Of a stretch of DNA of 64,000 nucleotides, positions 25,875 through 62,775 are shown one piece after another. A program made the translations under genes and the position numbers. Origin of the DNA: Epiperipatus broadwayi. Taxonomy: Eukaryota; Animalia; Onychophora. The first letter of the stretch is position 1. Every line of letters begins with the position of its first letter. The stretch is taken from NCBI GenBank assembly GCA_028023455.1, contig JAQFVV010000011.1, forward strand, positions 2,480,001 through 2,544,000, in the 5' to 3' direction. The notes beneath the pieces are model-generated. The model was not told where the DNA came from, did not search any database, and saw nothing but the letters and a program-made list of their open reading frames with translations.

Positions 25875-26700
25875 TCATCATCATCATCAATAGTATTTTC
25901 CTAGTCACATCATCAATTTATCCATTTTTTCAATCCATTCTCTTCATTGCCCAGTTCTTCAATTCCATGTAATTCTCCCAATCTCATATCATCCAACAAT
26001 GTCAATATTTTCCATTCTTTTTTCTTGCTTTCACTCACCATTTCCTCCAAAACATCTTTCATTAAACTATACCTTCTTTTTATATATGTCCAATCCATTT
26101 CTAATTTCCTCAATCAATTTTTCTTCATTTCTTCTTTTTAGAACTTCTCCATTTGTTATTTTATTTATACAATTAATTATTTTCCATTCTTTTCTATGAC
26201 CACATCTCAAAGGCTCCAAATCTGTTCTTAATTTTATTACTTTGTCCATGTTTTATAACCATACAATAGTATACTACCTTCTTTTTTCAAAGGTACACAA
26301 AATATTTTCCAATGCTATTCCATCCTCACTCAGCCAACTACCCAAATATGTAATTCCTTTACATGTTAAACTATGTTATCATGGATTTCAATTTGCAATC
26401 TTTTTACATTTCTCCTTATACATAAACACTTACTCTTCTCAACACTAATCCTCATTCCATATTCCATACATCCTTCTTCCAATTTATTCAACATATTCTG
26501 AAAACACTTTTCATCCTCAGCTATAAGAATCATACCATTATCAAATCTTATACATTTTCTTACTCTACTTCCAATGTTTGCTCTTCCACAGTCTAAATAA
26601 TTATTTAATATGTGGAATATAGAAATAACTATAAAAAAACATGTAACTGTTGATCTATGATAAACCATTGAATTTTTAATTTTCACAAGTGCACATTTGA
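25875..26700 (-). mobile_element. RTE-like LINE 3' fragment (RT motif 5 to tail)
   Basis: RFDNGMILIAEDEKCFQNMLNKLEEGCMEYGMRISVEKSKC (cf. RFADDMVL...YGMKIN..KTK); (GAT)n tail at ~25878. Confidence 0.8.
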
Positions 26701-27033
26701 AAAAGTTTATTTGCAAAGGAAAGAATTTCCAAAAAATAGATACTATTTTTTTAGTAGTGAAGAATGAAACTGAATTAATTTTTCATTTTTATATAATGTT
26801 CTCAACATATTGTCTAATTACATTGAAAAGATTCTGTAATAATTTAAATGTCTTTTTACTGCCTAAGAAATCATGTATTTTTAATGTCAGCATATATTCT
26901 CCTGTATTTTATTTCTACATAACAGTAATCAATAAATATTTGAATCATGATTTATATATCTCCTTGTATGATGACACACATATATATATATTGGATATAT
27001 TTTGGCTATTGTCTTTTATATATGCAGAAAAGA

Positions 27034-31559: not shown

Positions 31560-32330
31560 TTTGACTCTCAATTGCTTGAAATGGGTACACCTAGACATGG
31601 CTAGAGCCACCTTAGTGGCTTATGTAGAGTAACCCTTGGACAGACTGTTAAAGAAAACCCCCAACGCTGACATAAAAACTATTATGGCAATACCACAAAC
31701 TTCCAGGTATCATTATAAATTCTTTCCAGTGAAATCATTTGATCCCTCTTTCTGACAGGCTTGATTTTGCACAAAATTTCATTATGTAAATTACTGTTAC
31801 TCTTCCTAAATATCAGATGGCATCTCATTGTCCAGACTATATAGTTCATGATGATTGACAGACTAATTATTCCAAAGATTCCAGTTTTCAGACATTCATT
31901 CAGGTTAAAAATCCTTTGTTTATAGGATGTCATTCAATCATTGAGTATTGGTCTGCATTTATTTAATACCACAAAACCAAAGAATAGATGCTGCATTGAT
32001 TTATTCTCTTGATTGCACATCTGGCAGACTGGATTTTGTTTGGCAAAGCCTCTCCTCATGACTAAAAATTCACTGGTGGGAAGTGCAGTCAAATTTACTT
32101 TTATGATGAAATCCAGAAATCTTCCCTCCAGTATCCAGAATTTAAATTTCCTGATTAACAGATCGTTCAAAAGTTCCATGAGTGGCTGTGAAAGGGTTAA
32201 CCAATTGGTATACATCTCAATATTTCAATTTAGCTGACAACAATTCACCTCCAATACTTTCCCCCTTAACCAATACAATAAGGCTCTCCAGCCAAACGAG
32301 AGGTTTTAAGGGCGGGGCCTATCCATAGAC
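31560..32330 (-). mobile_element. L1/Tx1-like LINE C-terminal (zf-RVT-like) fragment
   Basis: RFLDFIIKVNLTALPTSEFLVMRRGFAKQNPVCQMCNQENKSMQHLFF: CxxC...H zinc-binding pattern downstream of RT. Confidence 0.75.
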
Positions 32331-34747: not shown

Positions 34748-36005
34748 ATCATCATCATCATTTTCAACCATAATTGATCCACTGCAGGATAGTCTCTCTG
34801 AGTTCAATCCATATTCTCTGATCTCTAGCTTCTCTTCTCTACATCACCCCTACACACTTCCTTATTTCATCCATCAAACTTACATGTGGTCTCCTTCCAT
34901 GTCTTTTACACTCTCTAGGAATCCAGTTTAAGATTTCAACTATCCATCTATTATCATCTCTTCTAGCAATATGTCCAGCTCAACTCCACTTCAGTCTGTT
35001 AATTCTTTCTATGATATCAATAACTGCTGTTTATTCTTTCATCCATGTATTTCATTTTTGATTTCTTGTAGTTACTGTGTATCTCTCCATACTTCATTGA
35101 GTGGTGCGAAGTCTCTGTATTACTTTTCTGTTGAGTGTTCAAATATCGGATCCATAAATAAGGACTGGTAAAACACAGTTATTAAAAGACTTCCTTTTCA
35201 AACACATAGTCATATTTCCTTTTACTATTAAATTATTTCTACCATAAGCACTTCAAATAAGTTTAATTTTATGATTAAATTTTATTCATTACATTTCCAT
35301 CTGTAGTAATAATCTGACCAAGATATTTCTTCTAACTCATCATTCTCAATCTTTATTTTTTTTCTTTTGAGAAAATCCATTGAATATTACTGTAGTCTTT
35401 TTAACATTTACCTTTAGTCCTATTTTCTTACTTTGATCTGATAACTTTTGCAACTTTTCCTGAAGCTCTAAAGCATTATTTGCAAAAATGACTACATAAT
35501 TCTGCAAAATCTAGATGATTTAAATAATCTCCATTTACTTTTACTCCTTAATTTCCCATTTTAATCCACAAAATACTTCTTACAAATGCTATAAAAAGTT
35601 TTGGAGATATGCAGTCACCCTGTCTTACATCCTTTTCAATGTTGAATTTCCCAATATCATTATGTAATCTAATTGTTGCTGTTGCATTTTTATAAATATT
35701 CTTTAAAATATGACAATATCCTGGATCTATACCTTGATGATCCAATACTTTAATCACTGAAGAAATGTTTATAGAATCAAATGCCTTTTCATAATCTACA
35801 AATCCAAAACATAATGACAACTCATAATCATTGGTTCATTCTAAAAACATTTTTAAATCCAGTTTGTTTGTTTGGTTGGCCAATATCAAAGTTTGCTGTA
35901 GATGAGTTATAATTGATAAGTCTGTAATTTCTAATTTTTTATCACCTTTTTTAAAATATTAATATTGGATTCTTTAAATTATCTGGTACATCTTTATCAT
36001 TTAAA
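34748..36005 (-). mobile_element. RTE LINE, RT to 3' end (sense part of a 5'-inverted copy)
   Basis: KKGDKK, LCFGFVDYEKAFDS, DVRQGDCISPKLF, FAELCSHF (FADD-like), WIVEILNW...; (GAT)n tail at 34748-34760. Confidence 0.85.
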
Positions 36006-40199: not shown

Positions 40200-41400
40200 A
40201 ATCGTTCATTCCATTTCAAAATCAAAATCACAAGTTTATCTAATGGTGGCCGAAAAGGAAATGTTGGGGTAAAACCTAACGTATCGGGCTCGAACCCCTA
40301 ACTCCCACTAACTGCAGCTGCTACACTCAATAATAACAAGATGCCTCTCTGGGTTAAAACAACTACCAACATCAGAAGCATAAAGCGGATCCTCATCAAA
40401 CGAAGGCTGTATAATAAATTAAAGAACAGGAAAACTCACGATGGATCATATATCTAGTTACCTATGATGATCAGAACTATTAGAAGTAAAAATATATTCT
40501 TTCACAAATTACCCGGGGATGTACAGGTAATAAAATAACTTTATGTATTGATTTACTAAGAAAGAAATTATTAATCAATTCTTTAGGCTTGCATATGAGA
40601 ATTCAACTAACAAACAAAAAAAAAAACTTTTTGTTAAGATTTTACTTACGGACATTAATTATCACTATTAGATATTGAGGTCACATGGGAAACTCAGTAA
40701 AGTGACCTCTAATAGTAATAAAGAAACAAAGAGAAAAGTAGTGGAAGGGAAATCTTTTTCATCCCTAATACAACACCTACAACTTTATAACCCGATAATA
40801 CCCTTTAACCTTAACCAAAAAATCACCTTATGGGAAGCATACAATATAATCAACTATAATCAACAACCCATTAAAACCAGCCTAAAAGTAACCAACAAAA
40901 GACTCATTACACACTTCAAAAGATGGAGTCTGGAACCCAAATTCCTTGACTTCATCATTAAAATAAATCTTAATGCGCTACCCACAAATTGGTTTCTTTA
41001 TCACTGAAGAGGTTTTACCAGCATTGACCCTATATATGGTCTGTGTGCTCATGAAGATGAAACCATAGACCATATTATACACTGGTGCCCAAGACTTAAA
41101 ACTCTGAAAGATATAATTATAATCAATTCCAACATAAGACCTGATATGATTTTCTCACTTGAAAATGCCATTCATAATGGATTTTTTTCAATAATAAGGC
41201 TTTCTCCCTTTGTCCTTTATTCCATATGGATAGTGAGATGCAAAAGTCTCATGGAATTACCCCCCCCCCACAAATCATACCATTGTTTTATCAAACGCTC
41301 AAAAAAAATCAAGAAACGTGACCAGCTCCTTGCCTCCAGTAAAGTCTTTGCTGACACCTGGTCTTTAACTGCTCTTTCCTTTTCCTGATTATCAATTCCC
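40200..41400 (+). mobile_element. L1/Tx1-like LINE C-terminal (zf-RVT-like) fragment
   Basis: KFLDFIIKINLNALPTNWFLYH*RGF...LCAHEDETIDHIIHWCP; clearly homologous to 31560-32330. 5' boundary approximate. Confidence 0.75.
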
Positions 41401-43423: not shown

Positions 43424-45971
43424 TTAATGAGATTTTTGTTTTGTACTTTGGATGTCAAATGTTGTATATCGGGTTTATAAATTGTAACTTTAAGCAATGC
43501 ACCTGATATGCTAGATTCATCAGTCAGCTTATTTCTATAACTATCTCTTATAAAATGTATTTCGGAAAATAATGATTCACAAGAATAAATTGAGGAGCAA
43601 ATAGACAGTAGAGCAGTTGCTAGTTTTTTTTAACAGTTATAGGTTTCAGGAATGGCATTCCAAGTTCTTCTCATTTCATATCCTGTGTTCTTTTTAATTG
43701 TGTCTAATAACCGATCATTTTCAATTACTTCGAAGTCCTTTCTTAAATCGACAAATTTTTGTTTACATATGGAACTAGACTGAAAATCAATTAATTGCAT
43801 TTCTAAATCTTCAAAGTTGAACCACTCAAAAATCTCTATATTGAGTTTATCTAATCCAATGATATCACAATATAAAATAAATTTCGATGTTTCTGCAAAT
43901 TGCCTGAAATCGTGAAACCTTGAAAAAAAATCATTGCTTATCGCCTGAATTACTGCAGAAAATTCTTGTATTATATTAACTCAATCTGGTTTTTCATGAG
44001 TTTTTAAATCTAAGAAGAATTTTTTTGTATTTGAGAAATACCTAAATGTGTTAGAAATAATGTCACCGTTGAAAACTTGCAATTTATTTTCAAATGCTTC
44101 AATTAAATCAAACATAACAATAACTGTCTTATTAATACTTTGCAACTTAACATTTAATTCACTCAAATGTGAGCATAAGTCAGTGAAAAACATTAATTTG
44201 CAATATATATATTTTTATAATTTTTTCATTATGAAAAAAAAGTCTAATTCCATCTAAACAGTTCACGAATCTTTGTAGAACTTTTCTGAAACTTAAACAT
44301 CGAACATTGTTATACATAAGTAAATCATTATAGACAGACTTTACCTCATGCAGTAATTCCAAAAATTTTCTTTTATTTAAAGCGTGTGCAGATAATAAAA
44401 TTCACCACTTTTATTACAGCACTCATAATGTCTTCCAAAGACTTGAAACTAGTCTTGGCTCATAAAACCTGCTGGTGTATAATACAGTGAAAACCAAGAA
44501 CTGACTGACCAATTTGTTTGGTGAATAAATTGAGGAAACCATTTTCCTTTCCAATCATACTACAAGAACCATCAGTAATAATTGACACAATTTTGTTTAA
44601 ATCAATTTGTTGCAAATATCCACCCCTTTTGTTGTTATTGCTAACGATGTTATATTAATCAATTCTTCTTTAATATGATTTACAACACAATAACGAATGA
44701 AAATTGCTAAACAAGCTGATCCAGTTGTATCAGTACTTTCATCAAGACAGAGAGACACAAAGTCAGAAGAATTTATATCCGTTTTTTGCTGATAAGTTAT
44801 ATTTTTAGCCATGCTCAGAATTCTGTCTTTTACCATGTTCCTAGCCAAAGGCAAATTCTTTATTCTCTGAATAATCTTTTCCTTGTTTTTAAAGTCTTCA
44901 AAGAGAACAGGTGTGCATTCCAACCATGTTTCCTTCACATATTCCTGGTCACTAAAAGGTTTTCCGCATTTAGCAATGTGAGCTTGTAAGATGTTAATTA
45001 ATTTTCAATAACAAGAAATATAATTGGATTAAAAAATTAGAAGATGATTGGGATAAATACTATTATCAATGTATAAAATATCTGCCAAAAAACCAAATTG
45101 TAAGAAGATGGGGTGGATTTTCCCTACTGTGTGTAAAATATGGAATAGTGTTTATTATAAAAAAAATGTTTGTTAGTTATTTTGTAAGAAAAAAAAAAAG
45201 TTTTTTGTTAATATGTAAATATTTGTGATTTTTTTTTATTTTTCTGTTAATAAAGTTATTTTACTTAAAAAAAAATTAGAAGCGGTTATGTTCTCCTGAA
45301 GGTTTGTGATGATGGTGTTTTAGTTGTATTTCTATATAGGACTATTTCCATCATCTAATATGGGTATTGAATGTCTTTAGAAAAATTTAACTTTATTTAA
45401 TGTAATTCATCGAAGTGTTTATTTATATGTAAATTGTTAATTTTAATAATTATATATATATATAAAAAGATAAAAACAATGATTTCTATATGATGGCATT
45501 ATTTTAGTAATTGCTAACAACTAGTAAGTAAATAGGCCTAACCTGTTTGATGTGCTATTACTAACTGTTGATTGTATTTGGAATATCTAAATAAAGTTAA
45601 ATTTTTCTAAAGACATTCAATACCCATATTAGATGATGAAATAGTCCAATATAAAAATACAACTAGAAGCGGTTATATTTGAAAAACTGCTGATAAATTT
45701 TATTAGGGATGCTGACTGCGTATTTTTGTTTTTAACTACCTGAACAATAAATTCCTTTTGTTCTTCCTTACGTTTCTCAAGGAGCAGTGTATGATTAGTC
45801 TCATAATGCCATTTTATTAAGAATGTCCTGCATACAACTGTCCCGGAACATAAAACGCACACCACTTTATTTCCTTTATTAATCATCCCATACTCTTGAA
45901 TCCACCAACTTTGGAATTCTCTGCTGCTTGTTTTTAATAGTAGTTTTTGTTTTTTTATTTTCACTAGCCAT
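43424..45971 (-). pseudogene. hAT transposase pseudogene (GTF2IRD2/EPM2AIP1/ZBED5-like family)
   Basis: VCVLC...HYETNH zinc finger, SLCLDESTD, FHCIIHQQ (CxxH), NNVRCLS (RWLS motif), CESLFSE...RNKLTDE dimerization region; stops, frameshifts and insertions at ~44995-45663. Confidence 0.9.
45290..45665 (-). mobile_element. Family C fold-back insertion nested in the hAT transposase, 31-nt tail, 13-bp TSD
   Basis: Arms 45321-45399 / 45588-45665; tagaagcggttat at 45277-45289 and 45664-45676 (the duplicated bases encode ITAS of the transposase). Confidence 0.88.
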
Positions 45972-48900
45972 GTTCGGTAAAACCATAAGAAATTTACGAA
46001 AATTGATAACAAAAATATTTCTTTAAATATTTCAAAAATCTTCACTTTAATGTAATGTTTAAATTAATTACCTTTAAAATTCAGCTACAAAGTAATAGTA
46101 TTACGCAGTGCACAGACGCAATATTACTATTCTTGCCACAATGAAATTTCAAACTCAACTGAGTACTCTGCATGCACTCTGTCTGTATCAACACATCCCA
46201 ACTCGTGACGTATCGCAAAGTATAGTCAGGACAAAAAATAAGCAAATCTAGAGGACGTTCAATTAATAGCCACAAAGCTGAGAGATTATTATAAATATAA
46301 AACTTATAAAAGAATAATCCGATGCACGTGTATTGAACAACAAAAATTGGAGCAACTTGTTAAATTATGGACAAAATATCAATTTAAAAAAACTTCTATC
46401 ACTTAATACAACTTATGTACTTGCCGCGCGAATCTTCGGTCTCACTTTCTGTGAATGTGTTCTTTGTCTGCACGCATTTCTTCCCCTTTGAATATCACAA
46501 TTATATCATTACTATAAGGAAATTTTTGTTCGGCCGATTGTTCAAATTTAGTATTCTATGGCTAGATGGTGCCTCAAATTTTTGAAATTTTGCATTTTTC
46601 GTTGTAAAATGAAGATACAATTTGAAAATCGATAACGTGCCAGAAAAATTTTCATACGTGCTACCTGTGACACGCACGCCAGAGGTTTGCAAAACGCTGG
46701 CTTAGGGAATCGACCAACCACTAATCACAGTGCTATCTATCACGTTTGTGGTCAAACATTTTTGACCTACAAAGCAACAAACAATTCAATTATTTTTTAA
46801 TGTAGCAAACAGTTGACTATTTATTACAACAACTAGTAAAAAACAAAACATAAAGGCATTATTTATTAGTTAAAATTTTGTCAAGAAAGTTATATATATA
46901 ATGTATTTGAAAAACTAATATCTTTGCCAATAAAAGATCTTTATTTATTAACCATTTCAAATTTTTCATTAAACTGAATCATACGAAGATAGATTAACTC
47001 TGTATATACATATATGTATATGTTTGTGCGTGTATAAGATAATATCAACATATAAGAATAAATAATCTCAGGAGGATAAAGATTATTTAATCAATTTATT
47101 ATATTTTGTGTGATGGTTCAGATGTTACCTATCGCATATGATTAGGTCCAATTACTGAATTTCCAGCTGTTATATAATAAATTAGCATTTCCTTAGTAAA
47201 AAATTATGATAACTTAAACTGAAGTTATTAAAAAAGAAATTGTAAAGTATTTAATTCCAGAAATAACTTGAATAAATTTCCTCATACTGCATTCGAACCA
47301 AAGAATTGTGTTTAAACTCTGGCTGATAGATTACTTTTATTGGGGTTTTTTTACGTGCCAATTATTTTACATTAACCGGTAATAAAGATTTATTAATTCT
47401 ACTAAATGTCATTTAGCATATATAAAACAGTTGGTTTTTTTAAATTCTCAACAAAGAAATGTTGTACCACCGCCATCTTAAACAAATATATTTCTTGACT
47501 CTTCAAAATAATGAGAAGTCTGAAATAAAGACTGAAATAATAAAAAAACAAATATTTAATATAATAATAAAAAAATAAATTTCATTAATAATTAGAAATA
47601 GGTGTTGGAAAAAAATAATAGAGTTTAAACTAATGCAATTTAACATTAATTATAATATCAAGATTATAGAATGGCAAAATCATTAGTTGGGGGAAAAAAA
47701 CACCTAAACAAAACAAGTGTATATATACAGTATATGTAAGTGAAACTCCTGTATAAAATTAATTTTTGTAAAGTCAAGAAGAAAAAACTATCAAACCAGA
47801 TATATATAAATGAAACTCCTCAGTATAAAAATACTATTCAGAAAGTGAAGAGAAAGTAAAAATTTATAATAATAATTCGCTTTATTTGAGTCTATTTTAA
47901 TAAATTACTATCGAAAATAAAACTTGATCAATTATAATTTTTGGAAAAATATCTTTGGCATATAAATTCCAACGTAAAGGAGAGATTACATCAAACACTT
48001 TTACAAAATAAACAATGATTGCAACGAGGCATTTATTCCTGTCAGAACTCCGCGGTCATTTTTTTAAAAACATATTTGATAAAACTGAGTGAAGAAACTT
48101 TTTTATTTATTTGCTGTCGCATTAGGATTTTATTGACTGCATTAGTTCTATATTTTAAATTGCTGATAAAGGTTTTTTTCCCAGTTGTATATATGTCTAT
48201 TGAAGTTCGACAAAAGACAAAACACACCCACCCACATACATCTTTAAGCATTAATGTGCAAAAAAAAAAAAAATCATTATACACACAGGAAAAATCCAAA
48301 CCTATTCTTATCAAGTGGATTGTATATAAATGTACAATGTTTAAAGGCATTGTCTAAAAAGAACAGAATCCAAAGCAGGAGAACATTAACGACATTCACC
48401 TTGGAGTAAAAGTAACTTTTAGAAAGCAATTGAGAATACAACTTATATACTATTACTTAGAAAATTCCTATGTATATTATTCAGTCATAGAAAATAGATG
48501 CCAGTCCAACTAAAAAAAAGATCCATGTGTAGTTAATTTGATAAATCAAGTGAAATAGGTTTTATTACTTTTCATGGTCTGTAATAATTACTAACAACCA
48601 GTATCAGAATCAATAATGTGGAAGAATGCTGATTGAAAGACATATCCAGAAAGTATGTTAGATAATTTAAACATTGAAGAAGACTTTTTAAAATATATAT
48701 TTAAACAATGTGTTGCTATAAATACACTAAGTAAATATAGTGACTCAATAGATTTTCTATCAATTCTGAAATAGAAGATGCTAAATAGATGTCAAAAAAA
48801 TTGATGAAATTTTGTGTAAATGATATTCTACATACATAAATAAATAAACTCAAAAAACATATAACAACAAATGTTATATATATTAACACAAAGATAAATT

Positions 48901-53000: not shown

Positions 53001-53606
53001 AATAATTTAATGAAAATTATATGAAAGAATACTGTCGTGATTATTATATAATACTCAGAAGGTTGGAATTCAGCATCATATTTGTTTTCACCACAGCTAT
53101 GCCACTCACTGTAAGTTCTAGCAATTATTAGATACTTGATAATAGTGCTTCATAAATCCTTATCCAATGCTGTCAACAACTTATGGCTTTTATCAGTGAA
53201 ATGTGAAGGTTCTTGGAACAGTGTAATTGAACTTTTAGTATTTAATGCACCTTCCCTACAGCTATCATCATTACCTCTAGCTTAATGTCTTTTCCCTTCA
53301 CCATACCTTATTTAATTAACCTGTCAATTATCTAGTCTTTTGCCAATCTAACCTACTCTACCTTCTACTATCTTAACATTGAACAACCTTTCCCCCTCAA
53401 TTTACTAATTGCCAAACTTCTCATTCCATTAACTGCATCCTAAATATTATTATTATCATCATTGTCACTATTGTTATTATTATTTATTATAGCTACTATA
53501 AATGCATCAGGCACATATATGTTGTGGCACCATAAATCTACTGAATTTCCTATGTATATATCTCAGACCAATAATTTGTTACACAATACATATACTAAAT
53601 TGCATG

Positions 53607-53616
53607 TTGCCACATT

Positions 53617-53655
<39 letters not shown>

Positions 53656-53663
53656 ATGTGGCA

Positions 53664-53664
<1 letters not shown>
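53607..53664. repeat. 13-bp inverted repeat enclosing a (TA)n tract
   Basis: ttgccacattaca (53607-53619) / tgtaatgtggcaa (53652-53664). Confidence 0.85.
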
Positions 53665-53695
<31 letters not shown>

Positions 53696-53698
<3 letters not shown>

Positions 53699-55832
53699 AA
53701 TGGATGTTTAAGACACCATTACAAAAATTATAGTTTTATAGGGGTGAAGAAAATAAAATAAATTTTATATAAGGTTTCGTTTGTAAAACTTGATTAAAAG
53801 TTTTTTTTAATGCTTGTACAAATATATATGTATGTGCGTGGGAATTATATTTTAATACCACAGTTATATTTGTTTTTTTTTTTTAATTTTAATTTTGAAA
53901 AAAAAAAAAAAGAAAACTAAGATTATTTTTTTTTGTTAAATTTATGTAAAAGTAAAGTGTACAAATAGATTGCTTTTCAGATTTGGGGATTTAGATTGAT
54001 AAGGCTAATTAAAAAGAAAGAAAACAAAAAGAAAAGAATTTTTCATTAGTTAATTCCTAGATCTGTAAAGGGCAATTTATTTCGTTAATTAGATAACTAT
54101 TGTTATCTAGATCGAGAATTTTTAAATTTTAATTAAAAAGAAAAAGTTTGGTAATTGGTTTAAGAGATATGATTCGGAGATAACAGGCTGAATCAGGCCA
54201 TTGGTTTATCTTGGACTAGCTTTCAATACTGGCATCAGCTAGAACACTTGCACCAGCGCAAAGAGACAGACACCAACTCTGACAGGAGAATTGCACGATT
54301 CCTGCCAAAATACTTGGAAAGAACGATTCCTGCATATTCTGAAAGCTGATCCAGTAATTATTCTACCTAGAATGAACATTAAACCTACAGCAAGAATATT
54401 TTCTTTACCATGATGTGCTAAGCTTCTCGCCAGGACAGGTTCGGACATCCTGTGTCTCCATTAACTGCCTATAATGCCATAAGAACCGGCTCCAAAGAAA
54501 CCACTAACCAACTCGCCCAAGCCTACCGTCAGTGAATCCAGAGCAACGGACTATACTTAAGAAGTCTAGTGCACTAGCATTTAAATTAATTATAAAGGTA
54601 CCTTACAGTTTTGCAATTTAAATAATATTGTCTTATATGTGTTTCCCTTTTTTAAAAAAATATAAATGTTTTTCAAGTTGTATCTTATGTAATTCGATTT
54701 CTGTGTGCTTGATTTTTTTTTTTTTTTAACGAGTGCTAGTTTCAAACCTATTACTGTCCATCCTATTTAAGTCTTAGTAAGTAAGATAGTAGTTTATTTA
54801 TAATCTCACATTCCTTTTATTATAGAAAGCAGTCTGGATATTACAGACTATTTTATTTGACTTCTGGCTCGTGACCCATTTTATTATTAGTTCTACTTAT
54901 GTCGTGAAACTTTATTTATAATAGACTATTAAGAAATATAATAGTTCTTAGTTTTATTTCTTCAAGCTTCCAATTCGTTTATTAGGGGCACGTACGATCG
55001 TTTTAACCCTCTCAATAGGTAGATCGTGAGCTCCTAGCCTGTCTCACTCAGAGGGAGGTCAATCGATTGAAAGTAATAACTTTCAACACTCTTTTTATTA
55101 TTATTAATGTTTTGGAAGCTACCTTCGTATTTCTTAGACTATTAAGAAATATAATAGTTCTTAGTTTTATTTCTTCAAGCTTCCAATTCGTTTATTAGGG
55201 GCACGTACGATCGTTTTAACCCTCTCAAAAGGTAGATCGTGAGCTCCTAGCCTGTCTCACTCAGAGGGAGGTCAATCGATTGAAAGTAATAACTTTCAAC
55301 ACTCTTTTTATTATTATTACTAATGTTTTGGAAGCTACCTTCGTATTTCTTCTGTTTCGACATAAATCTCTTTTCCTAACTATGGGTTATAAGCAGGAAG
55401 CTAACCTCCCTTGTCTTACGTGAGATCACTGTATACTTACTAATACTTCTGCTACTGCCAGTATTTTGCACTCTTTCACGCACAGGAAATCGCTCTCAAA
55501 GCCATATAAATATTTTAGTTTAATTTTGACGAATGTACGTGTAGTACATATTTTAAGTGTGCTTTAAAGTTTATTATTTAGATTTATGTTTATTTAATCA
55601 TACTTTTAATAAAATTATTTATTTATTCCTTTACTTAGTTGATTTTGTTTTCTGTTGCTACCTTTCCAACTCACTGAACAAAACATAGATCTCATTTGCT
55701 TGATTGAGCTAGTCCGGCGCATTCGATTCGCATATCCTGTAACCCCTTAAAAATAAATGTCTAGTTCCAAATTTCGGACTAGTGGCGCCCTGGCGGTCAG
55801 TTTATGCGAGTCTAAAGCTTTTGTCCGGTATA
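53696..55832 (+). repeat. 5' LTR
   Basis: TGTAATGG...CCGGTATA; roughly 97-98% identical to 58060-60201 by eye. Confidence 0.92.
54923..55351 (+). repeat. 213-bp tandem duplication inside the 5' LTR (also 59290-59715 in the 3' LTR)
   Basis: agactattaagaaat... starts at 54923 and 55136, and at 59290 and 59503. Confidence 0.95.
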
Positions 55833-55847
55833 TAGGATAGTAATTTT

Positions 55848-55869
55848 TGGCGCAACCAAACGTGGGAGC
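55848..55869 (+). promoter_or_regulatory. Putative primer-binding site, tRNA-Lys(CUU)-like
   Basis: tggcgcaaccaaacgtgggagc resembles TGGCGCCCAACGTGGGGC with insertions; lies 15 nt after the LTR end. Confidence 0.5.
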
Positions 55870-56233
55870 CGATATTAAAACTTTACGTGAGATGTTTTGT
55901 TCGGATGGTTGGGAAAAATAAACAGAAACGGTAGGCAAAAATAGGTGAAATAAAGTTAGTGGTAGAATAGAAGTTGATGGAAAGATGCAGGTAGTTTCGG
56001 ATCTGTCCGTATTTAATGTTTTGATATTCAAAAAGAGTTTATTAATTAGTTCGACGTTCATAAATTTTTTTAAAAAAAGTAAAGAATTTAAGTTTGCTTT
56101 GTAAAAATAAAATAAAGTTAGCTGTTGAAGATTAAATAAAAAAAAAACGTTAATAAACAGATTGAAAAGAAAAGTTCAGTTGGTAATTTGGAATAAAAAA
56201 ATTAGATTTAACGGAGCTAAGTTTATTTTGAAA

Positions 56234-57592
56234 ATGGAAGCTAAAGAAGAAAGCGATAGAGAGGCAGGTTGGGAAGAGAGCCCAGTTTCATTTAAACACC
56301 CCCAGATAGTAGAAAAAGAAGAGAGCGAGACACAGACGATGATGAAGATGATGATGAAGTTGATAATAGAAATGAAACAAAATCAGCAAGCCGAGTTGAA
56401 AGAAATACGACAGGAGTTGCTGGAAATGAAACAAAATATAACAAAACAAAATATAGAAATAAAACGGAGTCAACAAACAATACTGGAGGAGCTGAGAGCA
56501 GAAATGAAAGGAATGAGACAGGAAATATGGAAGAAAGTCGACAAAAATCAGGCAGCTATAGAAGTCATAGAGAAAGATAGGAATAAGGAGGTTCAGGAAG
56601 TTGAAATAGTAAAAGAAGAGATGAAAGAAGTAAAAGATGAGGTACAGCAAGATAGTGTTAGGACAGGTAGTTTAGAAATAAAGATGGTGCAGGTAGAAGG
56701 GATGTGCAAGGAATGGATAGACATACATAAAACAACACAAGTAGAATTGGAGATGTTAAAGGAAGGAGGAATTCAGAGAGAAATAGATCTGAGGGTTGAT
56801 GGTGTTGTCAGAAAATTAGAAAAGATGTTTCAAGGCATAGAGGAAAGTAAGGATAATTTGAAAACAGAAGTGCAACAAATGTGTAGTGATATGATAAAAG
56901 GACTCGAATATAGGCTAGCTGGGATAGAGAATAAACATAGGGCGTTCTATACTGAAGACAAACAGTATGAAACAGAAAATGAATATAGAGAGTCAGGAAG
57001 TAAAAGACAGGAGGGGCCCTCCAGTAGATTCTTGGAAAAACAATTCCTAATAGAAACGTTCAAGGCTGAGGTGGGAGAAAGCCCATTAAAACATTTAGAA
57101 ACTTTAGCTAACATGTTTCGTGTCCAAGACTGGCCGGAAAGGGATAAAGTTACAATCGCTAGTAACTACCTTCGAGAAACAGCCTCTGACTGGTGGCACA
57201 CTTTATTCACCAAACCAAGAACATTTGAGGAATATAGGCACACCCTTTTAAGAACATTTTGGAGTGAAGCCAGACAGGACGGGATACTCTATAAAATATC
57301 CCATGAAAGGTGTCCCAGCGTCTGCGGTGAAACATACACGCAATTTTTTTTTAGACAAGTAGCGAGACTCAAGGCATTAACGGCATTTCCGTTGTCCAAC
57401 GATCAAGTCACAAGGACTATCCGGCATAATATGCCACCAGACATACAACAAATGATGTTAAGTAATAATGGGCGGTCGATAGAAGAAATGGCGGAATTTT
57501 TAACGGCTGTAGATTTTGGCAATGTTACAAGAGAACCTGTAGACAGGTTCAGAAAATTAGATCATACTGATCAAACTCTCCATAAGAAGTAA
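56234..57592 (+). CDS. gag: Retrotransposon Gag: long N-terminal coiled coil plus Ty3/gypsy (Arc-like) capsid domain, 452 aa from first ATG
   Basis: Uninterrupted ORF; E/K/Q/M-rich heptad region followed by FKAEVGESPLKHLE...WPERDK...YLRETASDWW...FEEY...FWSEARQ...HNMPPDIQ, the retrotransposon-gag capsid signature; no CCHC knuckle or protease follows. Confidence 0.88.
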   Translation: MEAKEESDREAGWEESPVSFKHPQIVEKEESETQTMMKMMMKLIIEMKQNQQAELKEIRQELLEMKQNITKQNIEIKRSQQTILEELRAEMKGMRQEIWKKVDKNQAAIEVIEKDRNKEVQEVEIVKEEMKEVKDEVQQDSVRTGSLEIKMVQVEGMCKEWIDIHKTTQVELEMLKEGGIQREIDLRVDGVVRKLEKMFQGIEESKDNLKTEVQQMCSDMIKGLEYRLAGIENKHRAFYTEDKQYETENEYRESGSKRQEGPSSRFLEKQFLIETFKAEVGESPLKHLETLANMFRVQDWPERDKVTIASNYLRETASDWWHTLFTKPRTFEEYRHTLLRTFWSEARQDGILYKISHERCPSVCGETYTQFFFRQVARLKALTAFPLSNDQVTRTIRHNMPPDIQQMMLSNNGRSIEEMAEFLTAVDFGNVTREPVDRFRKLDHTDQTLHKK

Positions 57593-58042
57593 CCGCCTGA
57601 CCGAGTGTAAGTGATATTGATCGGACGTGATGCTAAAAAAAAAATTAAAAAAAAGGGATTTGTAATTGGACTACGAGTTGAGAATAGAAATTTATTTCGA
57701 CGTAGGTGATAAGCCTGAATGAATTTTGTAAATAATATTATATAATTACAACTATATATGTGTGTGATAAACAATATTACATTTTGATATTTTGAATTCT
57801 GTTCATTTTTATTTAATAAAATGTATAGTGGCTATCGTAATTGTATTACTTTGTTGTAAATAGTTATTTTAATAGATCGCCAGTATATTCCTGAAAATTT
57901 ATGTTACTTACAAATGATTTAAAATAGTATTCGTTAGGGTAGTCGGACGGATTTGATTTTTTTTTTAAGTGAGAACAAACTTAGAGAAAACTGGTTAGTG
58001 GTAGGCAGAGCAAAGTCAACTAAGTTTTTTTTTTTTTTTTGT

Positions 58043-58058
58043 GATGACGGAGAGGCAG
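58043..58058 (+). promoter_or_regulatory. Polypurine-tract-like site
   Basis: gatgacggagaggcag immediately upstream of the 3' LTR. Confidence 0.6.
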
Positions 58059-58059
58059 T

Positions 58060-60201
58060 TGTAATGGATGTTTAAGACACCATTACAAAAAATTATAGTT
58101 TTATAGGGGTGAAGAAAATAAAATAAATTTTATATAAGGTTTCGTTTGTAAAACTTGATTAAAAGTTTTTTTTTAATGCTTGTACAAATATATATGTATG
58201 TGCGTGGGAATTATATTTTAATACCACAGTTATATTTGTTTTTTTTTTTAATTTTAATTTTGGAAAAAAAAAAAAAGAAAACTAAGATTTTTTTTTTTTG
58301 TTAAATTTATGTAAAAGTAAAGTGTACAAATAGATTGCTTTTCAGATTTGGGGATTTAGATTGATAAGGCTAATTAAAAAGAAAGAAAACAAAAAGAAAA
58401 GAATTTTTCATTAGTTAATTCCTAGATCTGTAAAGGGCAATTTATTTCGTTAATTAGATAACTATTGTTATCTAGATCGAGAATTTTTAAATTTTAATTA
58501 AAAAGAAAAAGTTTGGTAATTGGTTTAAGAGATATGATTCAGAGATAACAGGCTGAATCAGGCCATTGGTTTATCTTGGACTAGCTTTCAATACTGGCAT
58601 CAGCTAGTATACTTGCAGCAGCGCAAAGAGACAGACACCAACTCTGACAGGAGAATTGCACGATTCCTGCCAAAATACTTGGAAAGAACGATTCCTGCAT
58701 ATTCTGAAAGCTGATCCAGTAATTATTCTACCTAGAATGAACATTAAACCTACAGCAAGAATATTTTCTTTACCATGATGTGCTAAGCTTCTCACCAGGA
58801 CAGGTTCGGACATCCTGTGCCTCCATTAACTGCCTATAATGCCATAAGAACTGGCTCCAAAGAAACCACTAACCAACTCGCCCAAGCCTACCGTCAGTGA
58901 CTCCCGAGCAACGGACTATACCTAAGAAGTCTAGTGCACTAGCATTTAAATAAATTATTAAGGTACCTTACAGTTTTGCAATTTAAATAATTTTGTTGTC
59001 TTAGATTTGTTTCTTTTTGAAAAAAATATAAATGTTTTTAAAGTTGTATCTTTTGTAATTCGATTTCGGTGTGCTTGATTTTTTTTTTTTTTTTAACGAG
59101 TGCTAGTTTCAAACCTATTACTGTCCATCCTATTTAAGTCTTAGTAAGTAAGATAGTAGTTTATTTATAATCTCACATTCCTTTTATTATAAAAAGCAGT
59201 CTGGATATTACAGACTATTTTATTTGACTTCTGGCTCATGACCCATTTTATTATTAGTTCTACTTATGTCGTGAAACTTTATTTATAATAGACTATTAAG
59301 AAATATAATAGTTCTTAGTTTTATTTCTTCAAGCTTCCAATTCGTTTATTAGGGGCACGTACGATCGTTTTAACCCTCTCAATAGGTAGATCGTGAGCTC
59401 CTAGCCTGTCTCACTCAGAGGGAGGTCAATCGATTGAAAGTAATAACTTTCAACACTCTTTTTATTATTATTAATGTTTTGGAAGCTACTTTCTTATTTC
59501 TTAGACTATTAAGAAATATAATAGTTCTTAGTTTTATTTCTTCAAGCTTCCAATTCGTTTATTAGGGGCACGTACGATCGTTTTAACCCTCTCAATAGGT
59601 AGATCGTGAGCTCCTAGCCTGTCTCACTCAGAGGGAGGTCAATCGATTGAAAGTAATAACTTTCAACACCCTTTTTATTATTATTAATGTTTTGGAAGCT
59701 ATCTTCGCATTTCTTCTGTTTTGACATAAGTCTCTTTTCCTAACTATGGGTTATAAGCAGGAAGCTAACCTCCCTTTTGTCTGACGTGAGATCACTGTAT
59801 ACTTACTAATACTTCTGCTACTGCCAGTATTTTGCACTCTTTCACACCCAGGAAATCGCTCTCAAAGCCATATGAATATTTTAGTTTAATTTTGATGAAT
59901 GTACGTGTAGTACATATTTTAAATGTGCTTTAAAGTTTATTATTTAGATTTATGTTCATTTAATTATACTTTTAATAAAATTATTTATTTATTCCTTTAC
60001 TTAGTTGATTTTGTTTTCTGTTGCTATCTTTTCAATTTTCCGAACAAAACATATAAGTTCTCATTTGCTTGATTGAGCTAGTCCGGCGCATTCGATTCGC
60101 ATATCCTGTAACCCCTTAAAAATAAATGTCTAGTTCCAAATTTCGGACTAGTGGCGCCCTGGCGGTCAGTTTATGCAAGTCTAAAGCTTTTGTCCGGTAT
60201 A
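58060..60201 (+). repeat. 3' LTR
   Basis: Direct repeat of 53696-55832. Confidence 0.92.
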
Positions 60202-62775
60202 ATATATATACCATGCTTTATTTGATTGTATTATATCATATTAACTTTGATGATGATAGTAAACCCACTAGTCATATTTTCTAAGTATTCTACATCATAG
60301 TGATACTTGGAGAATAAAATAATAAACTTTTGCAACTAAAAGACTGCCAAGGACACTTATCTCTAGTACCACTTTCATTATTGAAAGAATACTTTTGGGA
60401 ACTCATCTGATCTCATTATCTTGAGAATAATATAGTAGTATTAACTGCTCATCTAAACATATACTTTCCTCAAGGTAAATGATAAAATATTTTAAACTAG
60501 ATTTGGAATGAAAGTGAAAAAATAATATTTATAAAACAAAATTTATTTGCAATAATTATATTATTTAGAACTATTGTAATCTATTCTACATAAAGTAGAT
60601 AAATATAAGTAAATATTAAAATAGGGACTATATTCGTATTGGAGAAAGGTCACCAAACTTGACTGAATTTAATTCCATAAACTCTGATGAGCCTACATGA
60701 ACTATTGAACCTTACCTTCACACAATTATTATTATTAATTAACAAAAACTATAATAAGAAATATTAAAGATAAAAAAAATAGATTATTTGTTCTAATGAT
60801 GTTTAAATATTAAGCCTCAAAAAATTAAAAAAAATAAAGAAATATCAATATATCTGTTATAGTATCTATTAAATGTTAGGCATTGAAAAGAAAAGAAATA
60901 TTAAAATATGTGTGCTAATAATTTTTAAAACCGGTGAAAAGAAAATAAATATTAAAATATGATCACTTTTTAAAGCCCTTTTCTCTAGATAAAATGGATC
61001 TATCCATATGAATTCTGATTTTTACAACTAATTGACTAGAATGGGTTAGAATCTTTGGCTTAATTGATATACATAAAAGCACTCTCAAGCAACGTTTAGT
61101 GCTTCATTCTGTTTATCTTCTTTAGCTATTCTTTTAATTAGCAGGTATAATGGTGACAGGTATGAATTGCGATCCATCATTGTTAGATCTACAAAGAGTG
61201 GGTAAAAGATGACTGACATCTTCTTGTTATTTCATCAGTGATGGTTAGGGAAAGGAACAACATTTAAAATTGTCAGTAGGTTACATAGTTCCAGAATTTA
61301 AGAACCAGTATGCCAATAAAATGATTTTACTTCCTCATGGTGAAAATTTCAACGATAGTTTGTTTTTCTATATTAGCTTAATTAAGAGTTCACAATTCAG
61401 CATCTATTTACCCAATTAAGAGATATCATTCTGACTAGATAAATTCCCTTAATAGCCACTAAAAAAATTTCTTTAATGGTTGTGATGAGACTTAATGGCA
61501 GTTCTTCTATAGATTTTTTCTTTGCAAATTCATTCTCTTTTTTCCAATTTTTTCATCAGCCCTTGTTTGTATGAGAATTGTTAATCTCTTTCAGCAACTA
61601 TTGCCCACTTTATATCCCATCTACAATAGAATTCAACAATCGAGGTACCTTTGCAATTTTTGTCTCTTCAAATTCATTTTAGCTAACTACATCTTTTTCT
61701 TTTTCTAATATCAAAATAATATTTCTTTGTCTTTACAAAAGAAAATACAAAAATACTTTTTCTCCTTATCTTTCCCAATTGCATTCATTTTTATTAACAT
61801 TTTCCAAATTTAACATTTTTAAATGCAGAAACATTGGATAAATAAATTATTTCTAAATCACTTAAATCAAATAGATTAATTAGTTTTTGATCAGCAAAGA
61901 ATCAGTTAACGCTTATACAATCCCCAATATCAATAACAATCAACAATTTCAAACTGTTGTCAAGGCAACCTCATTTTTACAATATGTATATATTATTTGA
62001 AAGATAGAAAGAATAAAATAGAATTTTAACATTACACACAATTACTTCTGACTTTGATATTTTTGATTATAACTGTCATCCTTTTTAAAAATTTATAATT
62101 TTCAATGGAATATCTGAATTCTCCATCTAATTTTTTTTAAGTCAATATTATTTATATATTTTTATCTTTCCCCTAATGTTGGTTTTCATAAGCTCTTTTA
62201 AATGTATCAGTATCATCAATTAATGTACTAGTTCAATGTATCGACCCCACTTAACTTTTATAAAGCTGAAATTATTTCCATCTGGCCAGAAAGCTTGTAG
62301 GGTCAGTCTACTTTATGACAAATAGGGTCTGGTCCGTTAGAGTATGAATATTACAAGTAGGCTTAGATTGAAAACATTCATATTTTTCAAACTGGGCTTA
62401 TAGTCTGATAATGAAACAGAGAGATAAATGATGACTGATAGAAAAAGGTGTATTAGATCTTAAAAGTTTAGATGCTGGTCCAAAATCCAATGCTCCACAC
62501 TAATATAAGCTATAAATTTGAAACTAGTCTCAGATATCAGATATACCAGCACTGAATGGGGATTTATTAGGTAATACAATCTGGTGTTTGTTAGTAAGGT
62601 GTACAATACATGATATAGCTGTGGTGGAAAAAGTATGCCACTGATATATCAATAGGCAAGCTGAAATCATGTGATGTATTCATATAAAAGTCAAAATTCT
62701 AAATAATGGAATCATTGTCATAATATAGCTGAAAAATAAAAAGTCATACACATGTGCTAAGGCAATATAATATAG

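Follow-up and report, generated by a model that had tools for sequence, protein, structure and literature searches.

A truncated gag gene with an Arc-like capsid domain between long terminal repeats: a likely internal deletion of a Ty3/gypsy element

Is a retroelement that has retained only part of gag between two complete long terminal repeats (LTRs) a lineage in its own right, or is it a deleted copy of an ordinary autonomous element? The question is raised by positions 53696-60201 of a 64,000-nucleotide stretch of contig JAQFVV010000011.1 (hereafter the window, that is, the whole stretch analysed), where two long direct repeats in the same orientation (53696-55832 and 58060-60201) form an LTR pair around a single open reading frame (ORF) that encodes a Gag-like protein. 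A preliminary description of this DNA had seen in it either an animal parasite comparable to the gag-only TR-GAG elements or an intermediate in the domestication of a capsid gene; both proposals were left unsupported by the present analysis, since the near relatives carry pol and the intactness of the ORF is compatible with neutral drift. The explanation that we regard as rather likely is that of an ordinary, internally deleted, non-autonomous Ty3/gypsy (Metaviridae-type) copy that keeps the matrix-position and capsid parts of gag. The parts of the element are the following.

53696..55832, plus strand: 5' LTR, 2,137 bp, starting TGTAATGG and ending CCGGTATA
55833..56233, plus strand: leader (5' untranslated region), 401 bp, 28% GC, closed in all frames
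56234..57592, plus strand: truncated gag ORF, 452 aa, with its ATG at 56234 and its stop at 57592
57593..58042, plus strand: non-coding 3' interior, without pol or env remnant, 28.7% GC, stops in all frames
58043..58058, plus strand: purine-rich run of 16 nt, resembling a polypurine tract (PPT), one base ahead of the 3' LTR
58060..60201, plus strand: 3' LTR, 2,142 bp

The LTRs make up two thirds (66%) of the 6,506 bp of the element and leave an interior of 2,227 bp, in agreement with the preliminary description. Both are complete and they are about 97% identical: their global alignment contains 2,133 aligned sites with 54 substitutions (32 transitions and 22 transversions) and 8 indel events, giving a Kimura two-parameter (K2P) distance of 0.0258, and the copy is fairly young by this measure (LTR K2P 0.026). 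About 12 of the differences between the two LTRs are packed into 27 nt (54627-54653 versus 58992-59019) against a background of about 2%; this cluster is a local rearrangement or a conversion tract, and it slightly inflates the divergence estimate.

The interior had been described as holding one intact ORF of 452 aa with no zinc knuckle, protease (PR), reverse transcriptase (RT) or integrase (IN), followed by some 470 bp of AT-rich, non-coding DNA, and every part of this picture stood. The start codon has an A at -3 and a G at +4, with a TTG in frame upstream at 56162, and the ORF is the only one of at least 150 aa across the 64-kb window. The 467 bp that separate its stop from the 3' LTR are closed in all frames (28.7% GC). 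All frames of the element lack zinc-knuckle (CX2CX4HX4C), D[ST]G and YxDD motifs, and a tblastn search of the window, queried with the Gag relatives described below and two pol proteins of related elements, gave no match outside the gag ORF; thus the zinc knuckle, protease, reverse transcriptase and integrase of such an element were not found anywhere in the 64 kb. At the level of the whole protein, little can be recognized. A word-indexed search returned neither a relative nor the protein itself, and an exact-sequence look-up gave no record; Pfam yielded only Retrotrans_gag, with an E-value of 1.9, and the sequences of the Protein Data Bank (PDB) only a caveolae coiled-coil, with an E-value of 0.8.

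The identity of the protein emerges from its C-terminal part, in which two lobes were delimited.

57059..57262, plus strand: capsid N-lobe, aa ~276-343, four helices predicted by AlphaFold2 (AF2), with a profile match to the Arc N-lobe
57263..57562, plus strand: capsid C-lobe, aa ~344-443, five AF2 helices; the alignment of the family profile A1 to Arc extends to position 170, and Foldseek matches dArc1 and the Arc C-lobe

An exhaustive HMMER (phmmer) search with residues 251-452, run against clusters representing 15 billion proteins with a cutoff of E 1e-3, retrieved 124 relatives at or below that cutoff (best E 2.2e-10), which are 19-30% identical to the query and carry Ty3_capsid, Arc_capsid_dom or Retrotrans_gag domains; no protein in these clusters exceeded about 30% identity to the capsid region. 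Taken alone, the capsid domain matches Ty3_capsid at E 2.7e-4 with 20.8 bits, under the Pfam cutoff of 29.1 bits. Profile A1, built from this domain and 60 relatives, matches rat and human Arc over both lobes (E 4.4e-16), as well as dArc1 (E 2.3e-4) and, weakly, PNMA2. When AlphaFold was given only the sequence of the whole protein, it did not model the C-terminal domain (predicted local distance difference test, pLDDT, below 50); this result was set aside for a model based on the A1 alignment, which reached a pLDDT of 87.9 and a predicted template-modelling score (pTM) of 0.74 and shows nine helices, four followed by five. The best matches of this model in a Foldseek search of the PDB were all retroelement or retroviral capsids: the C-terminal domain (CTD) of Arc (E 7e-5), dArc1, dArc2, PNMA2, Copia, HIV-1 capsid (CA) and Ty3. 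Superposed on the dArc1 capsid, it gave template-modelling (TM) scores of 0.60/0.72 and a root-mean-square deviation of 3.2 Å over 160 columns. Sequence, profile and predicted fold therefore support a two-lobed, all-helical capsid of the Arc/Ty3 type; this domain had been recognized in the preliminary description, and the comparison of a predicted structure with dArc and Ty3 CA that it called for came out in favour of a capsid fold.

The relatives, which lie on environmental or Logan contigs, bear directly on the origin of the element. The nearest of them have an amphipathic N-terminus followed by CA, and in two of them (P0003 and P0125) the alignment to the window ORF spans both parts. Every near relative with enough sequence context (L001, L002, L006 and L007) belongs to an autonomous element, in which it is the Gag protein and pol follows directly. 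In L001, LTRs of 400-450 bp enclose a gag at 626-2611 and a pol of 1,158 aa (RVT_1, RNase H (RH) and integrase) that starts 90 nt later. In L002, L006 and L007, PR/RT/RH/IN follow gag after 40-170 nt (up to ~500 nt in L006), and L003 has kept a protease remnant. The Gag proteins of intact relatives end in a tail of 100-260 aa, rich in R, N and Q and without a zinc knuckle, whereas the window ORF stops 27 aa past the capsid.

P0007 was examined as a second candidate for a gag-only LTR element and rejected, as it belongs to a cluster of multi-capsid-repeat genes without LTRs. This 673-aa protein (L004 2883-4904 and L005 10001-12022) has three tandem capsid-like repeats, the genes beside it hold more copies of the same repeat, and neither pol nor an LTR was detected there; these loci are thus a cluster of gag-derived genes in an AT-rich organism.

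The deletion that we favour would have started from a parent organized as LTR, primer-binding site (PBS), gag (helical N-terminus, CA and an R/N/Q-rich basic tail), pol (PR-RT-RH-IN) and LTR. The Gag tail and the whole of pol would have been lost either through a switch of template in the course of reverse transcription or through a deletion in the copy once it was inserted, leaving the LTRs, the leader, the matrix (MA)-position and CA parts of gag, the ~470 bp of 3' non-coding DNA and the PPT. Such a copy could move only if PR, RT and IN were supplied in trans by a related autonomous element. If expressed, its protein, which has no nucleic-acid-binding tail, would be expected to self-associate or to co-assemble with the Gag of the partner.

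The preliminary description took a PBS, a PPT and a target-site duplication (TSD) to be retained, and concluded that the element had apparently transposed in its present form. The PPT-like run does adjoin the 3' LTR. The two other signals, on which that conclusion was grounded, fail to sustain it. The sites concerned are these.

55848..55869, plus strand: PBS-like site, 15 nt past the LTR end, an interrupted version of the PBS of the relatives
55783..55790, plus strand: TGGCGCCC, the first 8 nt of the PBS of the lineage, within the 5' LTR and ~50 nt before its end
60152..60159, plus strand: TGGCGCCC, 3' LTR copy, ~50 nt before the 3' LTR end
53636..53695, no strand: (TA)n tract flanking the element on the left, with (TA)n again on the right at 60202-60210

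L001, L002 and L006 share exactly the same 18-nt PBS, located 2-3 nt past the LTR and 216-394 nt ahead of gag; it is probably of the tRNA-Lys type, like that of Drosophila gypsy, and the same attribution would hold for the parent. This 18-mer has no match in the window at up to 3 mismatches. The PBS-like site of the window aligns with it only if three one-base interruptions and one mismatch are allowed, at a distance of 386 nt from the gag ATG that compares with the 216-394 nt of the relatives. From the indel rate of the LTRs, about 0.03 indels would be expected in 18 nt since insertion, and the interruption of the PBS is therefore not a matter of simple decay after insertion. The LTRs end in TG...TA rather than the canonical TG...CA, both copies finishing in ...GGTATA, and a few bases may be missing from the 3' LTR at its (TA)n flank, a loss which may account both for these ends and for the 15-nt gap between LTR and PBS. 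An interrupted PBS and a non-canonical 3' LTR end together suggest that this copy would make a poor template. As for the TSD, ATATAT borders the element on both sides, but each flank is itself (TA)n, so that a duplication is inseparable from the microsatellite and the match is uninformative. Some gypsy-group elements prefer ATAT/TATA targets, a preference with which insertion into (TA)n would at least agree.

TGGCGCCC occurs only twice in the 64 kb, once in each LTR, with 0.04 occurrences expected by chance, and may be the relic of an older LTR/PBS boundary. Its presence in both repeats, ~50 nt before their end, could also be taken, together with the 15-nt gap, the non-canonical 3' terminus and the lack of a verifiable TSD, as a sign that the locus is not an insertion in its own right. 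It would instead be either a partial duplication in tandem or a rearranged tandem LTR-internal-LTR array, broken off on its right by a deletion within (TA)n. Such an array would have to accommodate a PPT-like run at the start of the 3' repeat, repeats that begin with TG, a gag lying between them in the right orientation and the same microsatellite on both sides. A simple LTR element is the more economical account, and we regard the array as the least probable of the explanations considered, to the point of being hardly credible.

Two further observations concern the repeats and their surroundings. Each LTR contains two tandem units of 213 bp, which a repeat search found to be 91-99% identical:

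54922..55348, plus strand: two tandem 213-bp units within the 5' LTR
59289..59715, plus strand: two tandem 213-bp units within the 3' LTR, the counterpart of those in the 5' LTR

Immediately to the left of the element, a palindrome of 50+50 nt centred on (TA)n (53586-53685) carries TGTAATGTGG and CCACATTACA in its arms, and these resemble the small inverted repeat found at the start of the LTR (TGTAATGG...CCATTACA, 53696-53723).

The N-terminal half of the protein had been described as some 200 aa of coiled coil. A long helical region is indeed predicted there, but its periodicity is not that of a heptad.

56309..56989, plus strand: N-terminal amphipathic helical region, aa 26-252, domain in the MA position, delimited from AF2, composition and periodicity

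Single-sequence AlphaFold places helices at 26-140, 145-176 and 179-252, with pLDDT values of 60-80, in a segment that is devoid of proline and 40% charged. Its hydrophobic period peaks at 3.60 residues, a signal reached by none of 300 shuffled sequences, and a classic heptad coiled coil, with its period of 3.5 residues, was rejected on this ground. The N-termini of five relatives (P0001, P0002, P0003, P0009 and P0125) have periods of 3.62-3.68 and show identity lags at 11, 18 and 29. These values suggest amphipathic helices of the hendecad type, similar to those of apolipoproteins. Profiles of the N-termini of the lineage (A2 and A3) match apolipoproteins A-IV, A-I and E along with generic coiled coils, and the apolipoprotein matches are consistent with a hendecad-type period. 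In the position of a matrix domain, this pattern possibly serves a putative binding to lipids or membranes. A hendecad-type (3.6-3.67-residue) region in the matrix position of this lineage had previously gone unremarked.

The same two profiles were used to look for homology with the N-terminal domain (NTD) of Arc. Full-length rat Arc (7r24_A) was matched only in its capsid, at residues 216-351, and Arc was absent from the matches of the N-terminal profiles, so that homology to the Arc NTD was rejected. As judged from sequence, the likeness to Arc is one of layout only, with no detectable homology at the N-terminus. A recent survey gives the origin of the ~200-aa N-terminal coiled coil of ARC as unknown and reports that no metaviral homologue of it was found (PMC10516033). 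The region described here bears on that source, as it does on the way in which the variable N-terminal domains of metaviruses work (PMC10516033).

Could the ORF have remained open because it is of use to the host? Neutral decay of the ORF was simulated with the LTR divergence as a clock. With 17.5 substitutions expected in the ORF, the probability of neither a nonsense mutation nor the loss of the start codon is 0.42. The ORF escapes a frameshift with a probability of 0.15 if every frameshifting indel of the LTRs enters the count, and of 0.53 if homopolymer indels are left out, the LTR having seven homopolymer runs of at least 6 and the ORF one. The joint neutral probability of an intact ORF is thus ~0.06-0.22, and intactness is therefore no demonstration of constraint; purifying selection read from it was rejected as not significant in this simulation. 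The ORF would still be open because the copy is young. A capsid gene on its way to domestication, either Arc-like or in the style of the restriction factors Fv1 and Ty1 p22, and kept by selection, would likewise have an intact ORF with its conserved residues in place, and its layout of a ~200-aa helical N-terminus and a bilobed CA without nucleocapsid (NC) would parallel that of tetrapod Arc, the protein that the CA profile of the family matches best. The LTRs, complete and 97% identical, speak instead of a recent insertion that is still element-like, intactness is not significant when set against neutral decay, and the N-terminus has no homology to the Arc NTD. We therefore regard domestication in progress as very unlikely.

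A more substantial alternative to a single deleted copy is an amplified, gag-only, non-autonomous family, the animal counterpart of the plant TR-GAG elements, which would move in its deleted form with its own Gag/CA and with the PR, RT and IN of a partner. A single intact gag ORF between LTRs, accompanied by a PPT and a PBS-like site, is what such a family would look like; the conserved capsid residues are all kept, and the neutral probability of an intact ORF, ~0.06-0.22, is on the low side. Copies of it were nevertheless not encountered. The rest of the 64-kb window is free of further copies, solo LTRs and gag/pol fragments of the family, and no second copy, solo LTR or partner was met with in the window, among the 15 billion proteins or in DNA collections; scans with the back-translated protein of metagenome and viral contigs found no relatives, and scans with exact LTR words of metagenome and prokaryotic genome contigs gave zero matches, the host genome being evidently absent from these collections. 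The PBS interruption, far beyond the predicted post-insertion decay, the 3' LTR end in TA rather than CA, a Gag devoid of the basic tail of its relatives and a length of 6.5 kb, over the TR-GAG limit of <4 kb, also count against such a family. A one-off deletion would show itself as a single copy whose relatives all carry pol, a case that the preliminary description had contemplated. The pol-bearing part of it is borne out by the near relatives L001, L002, L006 and L007; the single-copy part agrees with the collections searched, within their coverage as just given. On balance an amplified gag-only family is unlikely, at odds that nevertheless deserve attention.

Several points weigh against the internal deletion of an ordinary element. 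With identities of only 19-30% even in the nearest relatives, the true parent family is unseen. The LTRs of the window element measure 2.1 kb against 0.4 kb in the relatives. All eight columns that are invariant among the closest relatives are conserved in the window protein (F276, P284, L291, W320 and W343 in the N-lobe; Q348, L382 and L423 in the C-lobe), and these 8/8 residues, in the only long ORF of the 64 kb, would also fit ongoing constraint. Finally, copy number in the host genome lies outside the reach of the searches, which leaves for the amplified gag-only family the minor share of probability given to it above.

The surroundings of the element offer little that is related to it. 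The window has 28.5% GC, and Rfam and tRNA scans of it gave no match. Transposable element (TE) fragments were found at 26369-26716 (minus strand), 35551-35820 (minus), 31937-32215 (minus), 40675-41004 (plus) and 45632-46045 (minus); they comprise long interspersed element (LINE, non-LTR) reverse transcriptase (RVT_1, zf-RVT) and a zinc finger of the Spin-doc/hAT type, and no intact host gene was detected. Dispersed repeat pairs with 80-91% identity (17778-18049/34805-35076, 583-725/4762-4904, 815-915/1778-1878 and 7429-7518/45311-45400) are probably families resembling miniature inverted-repeat transposable elements (MITEs) or short interspersed elements (SINEs), unrelated to the LTR element. 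The region is TE-rich intergenic DNA, probably of an invertebrate animal.

Among known systems, the autonomous Ty3/gypsy elements L001, L002, L006 and L007 offer the closest comparison. Their Gag proteins also have an amphipathic N-terminus with a 3.6-3.67-residue period and a two-lobed CA without a zinc knuckle, and a PBS motif lies at a similar distance ahead of gag. They differ from the window copy in CA sequence (19-30% identity), in the R/N/Q-rich tail of Gag, in the downstream pol, in LTRs of 0.4 kb and in a perfect PBS 2-3 nt past the LTR, none of which the window copy possesses. The LARD and TRIM elements, internally deleted LTR derivatives named in PMC4350172, resemble it in being non-autonomous and dependent on the enzymes of a partner; they carry no ORF, whereas the window element keeps most of gag. 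TR-GAG elements, defined as shorter than 4 kb and present in at least 2 genomic copies, are known from plants and brown algae, whereas Drosophila yielded no candidate (Chaparro et al. 2015, PMC4350172). Like the window element, they are LTR elements whose sole ORF is Gag and which have no pol (PMC4350172); the window element differs in its 6,506 bp, over the <4 kb limit owing to its 2.1-kb LTRs, and in its genomic setting, which is probably that of an animal. An amplifying gag-only LTR family of invertebrates, which would be the first animal TR-GAG-like one, with an expressed truncated protein riding in the capsids of a partner or interfering with them, is improbable; if true, it would provide a live snapshot of the step just before the birth of an Arc-like gene.

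In mouse Fv1 and yeast Ty1 p22, a Gag or CA protein that is truncated or stands alone can interact with a related element's capsid. By analogy, interference might be a consequence of the architecture of the window protein. Fv1 is cited in PMC10516033. The domesticated Ty3/gypsy capsid genes, Arc in tetrapods and dArc1 and dArc2 in Drosophila, share the bilobed CA fold predicted here, and tetrapod Arc has in addition a long helical N-terminal region and no NC. Arc genes are nevertheless LTR-less host genes conserved across species, while the window ORF lies between 97%-identical LTRs, and the Arc NTD has no sequence homology to the window N-terminus. Because the parent Gag would already have lacked a zinc knuckle and had an N-terminus that was long and amphipathic, a single internal deletion in such a metaviral element can produce the layout of Arc, a long helical N-terminus and a bilobed capsid without NC.

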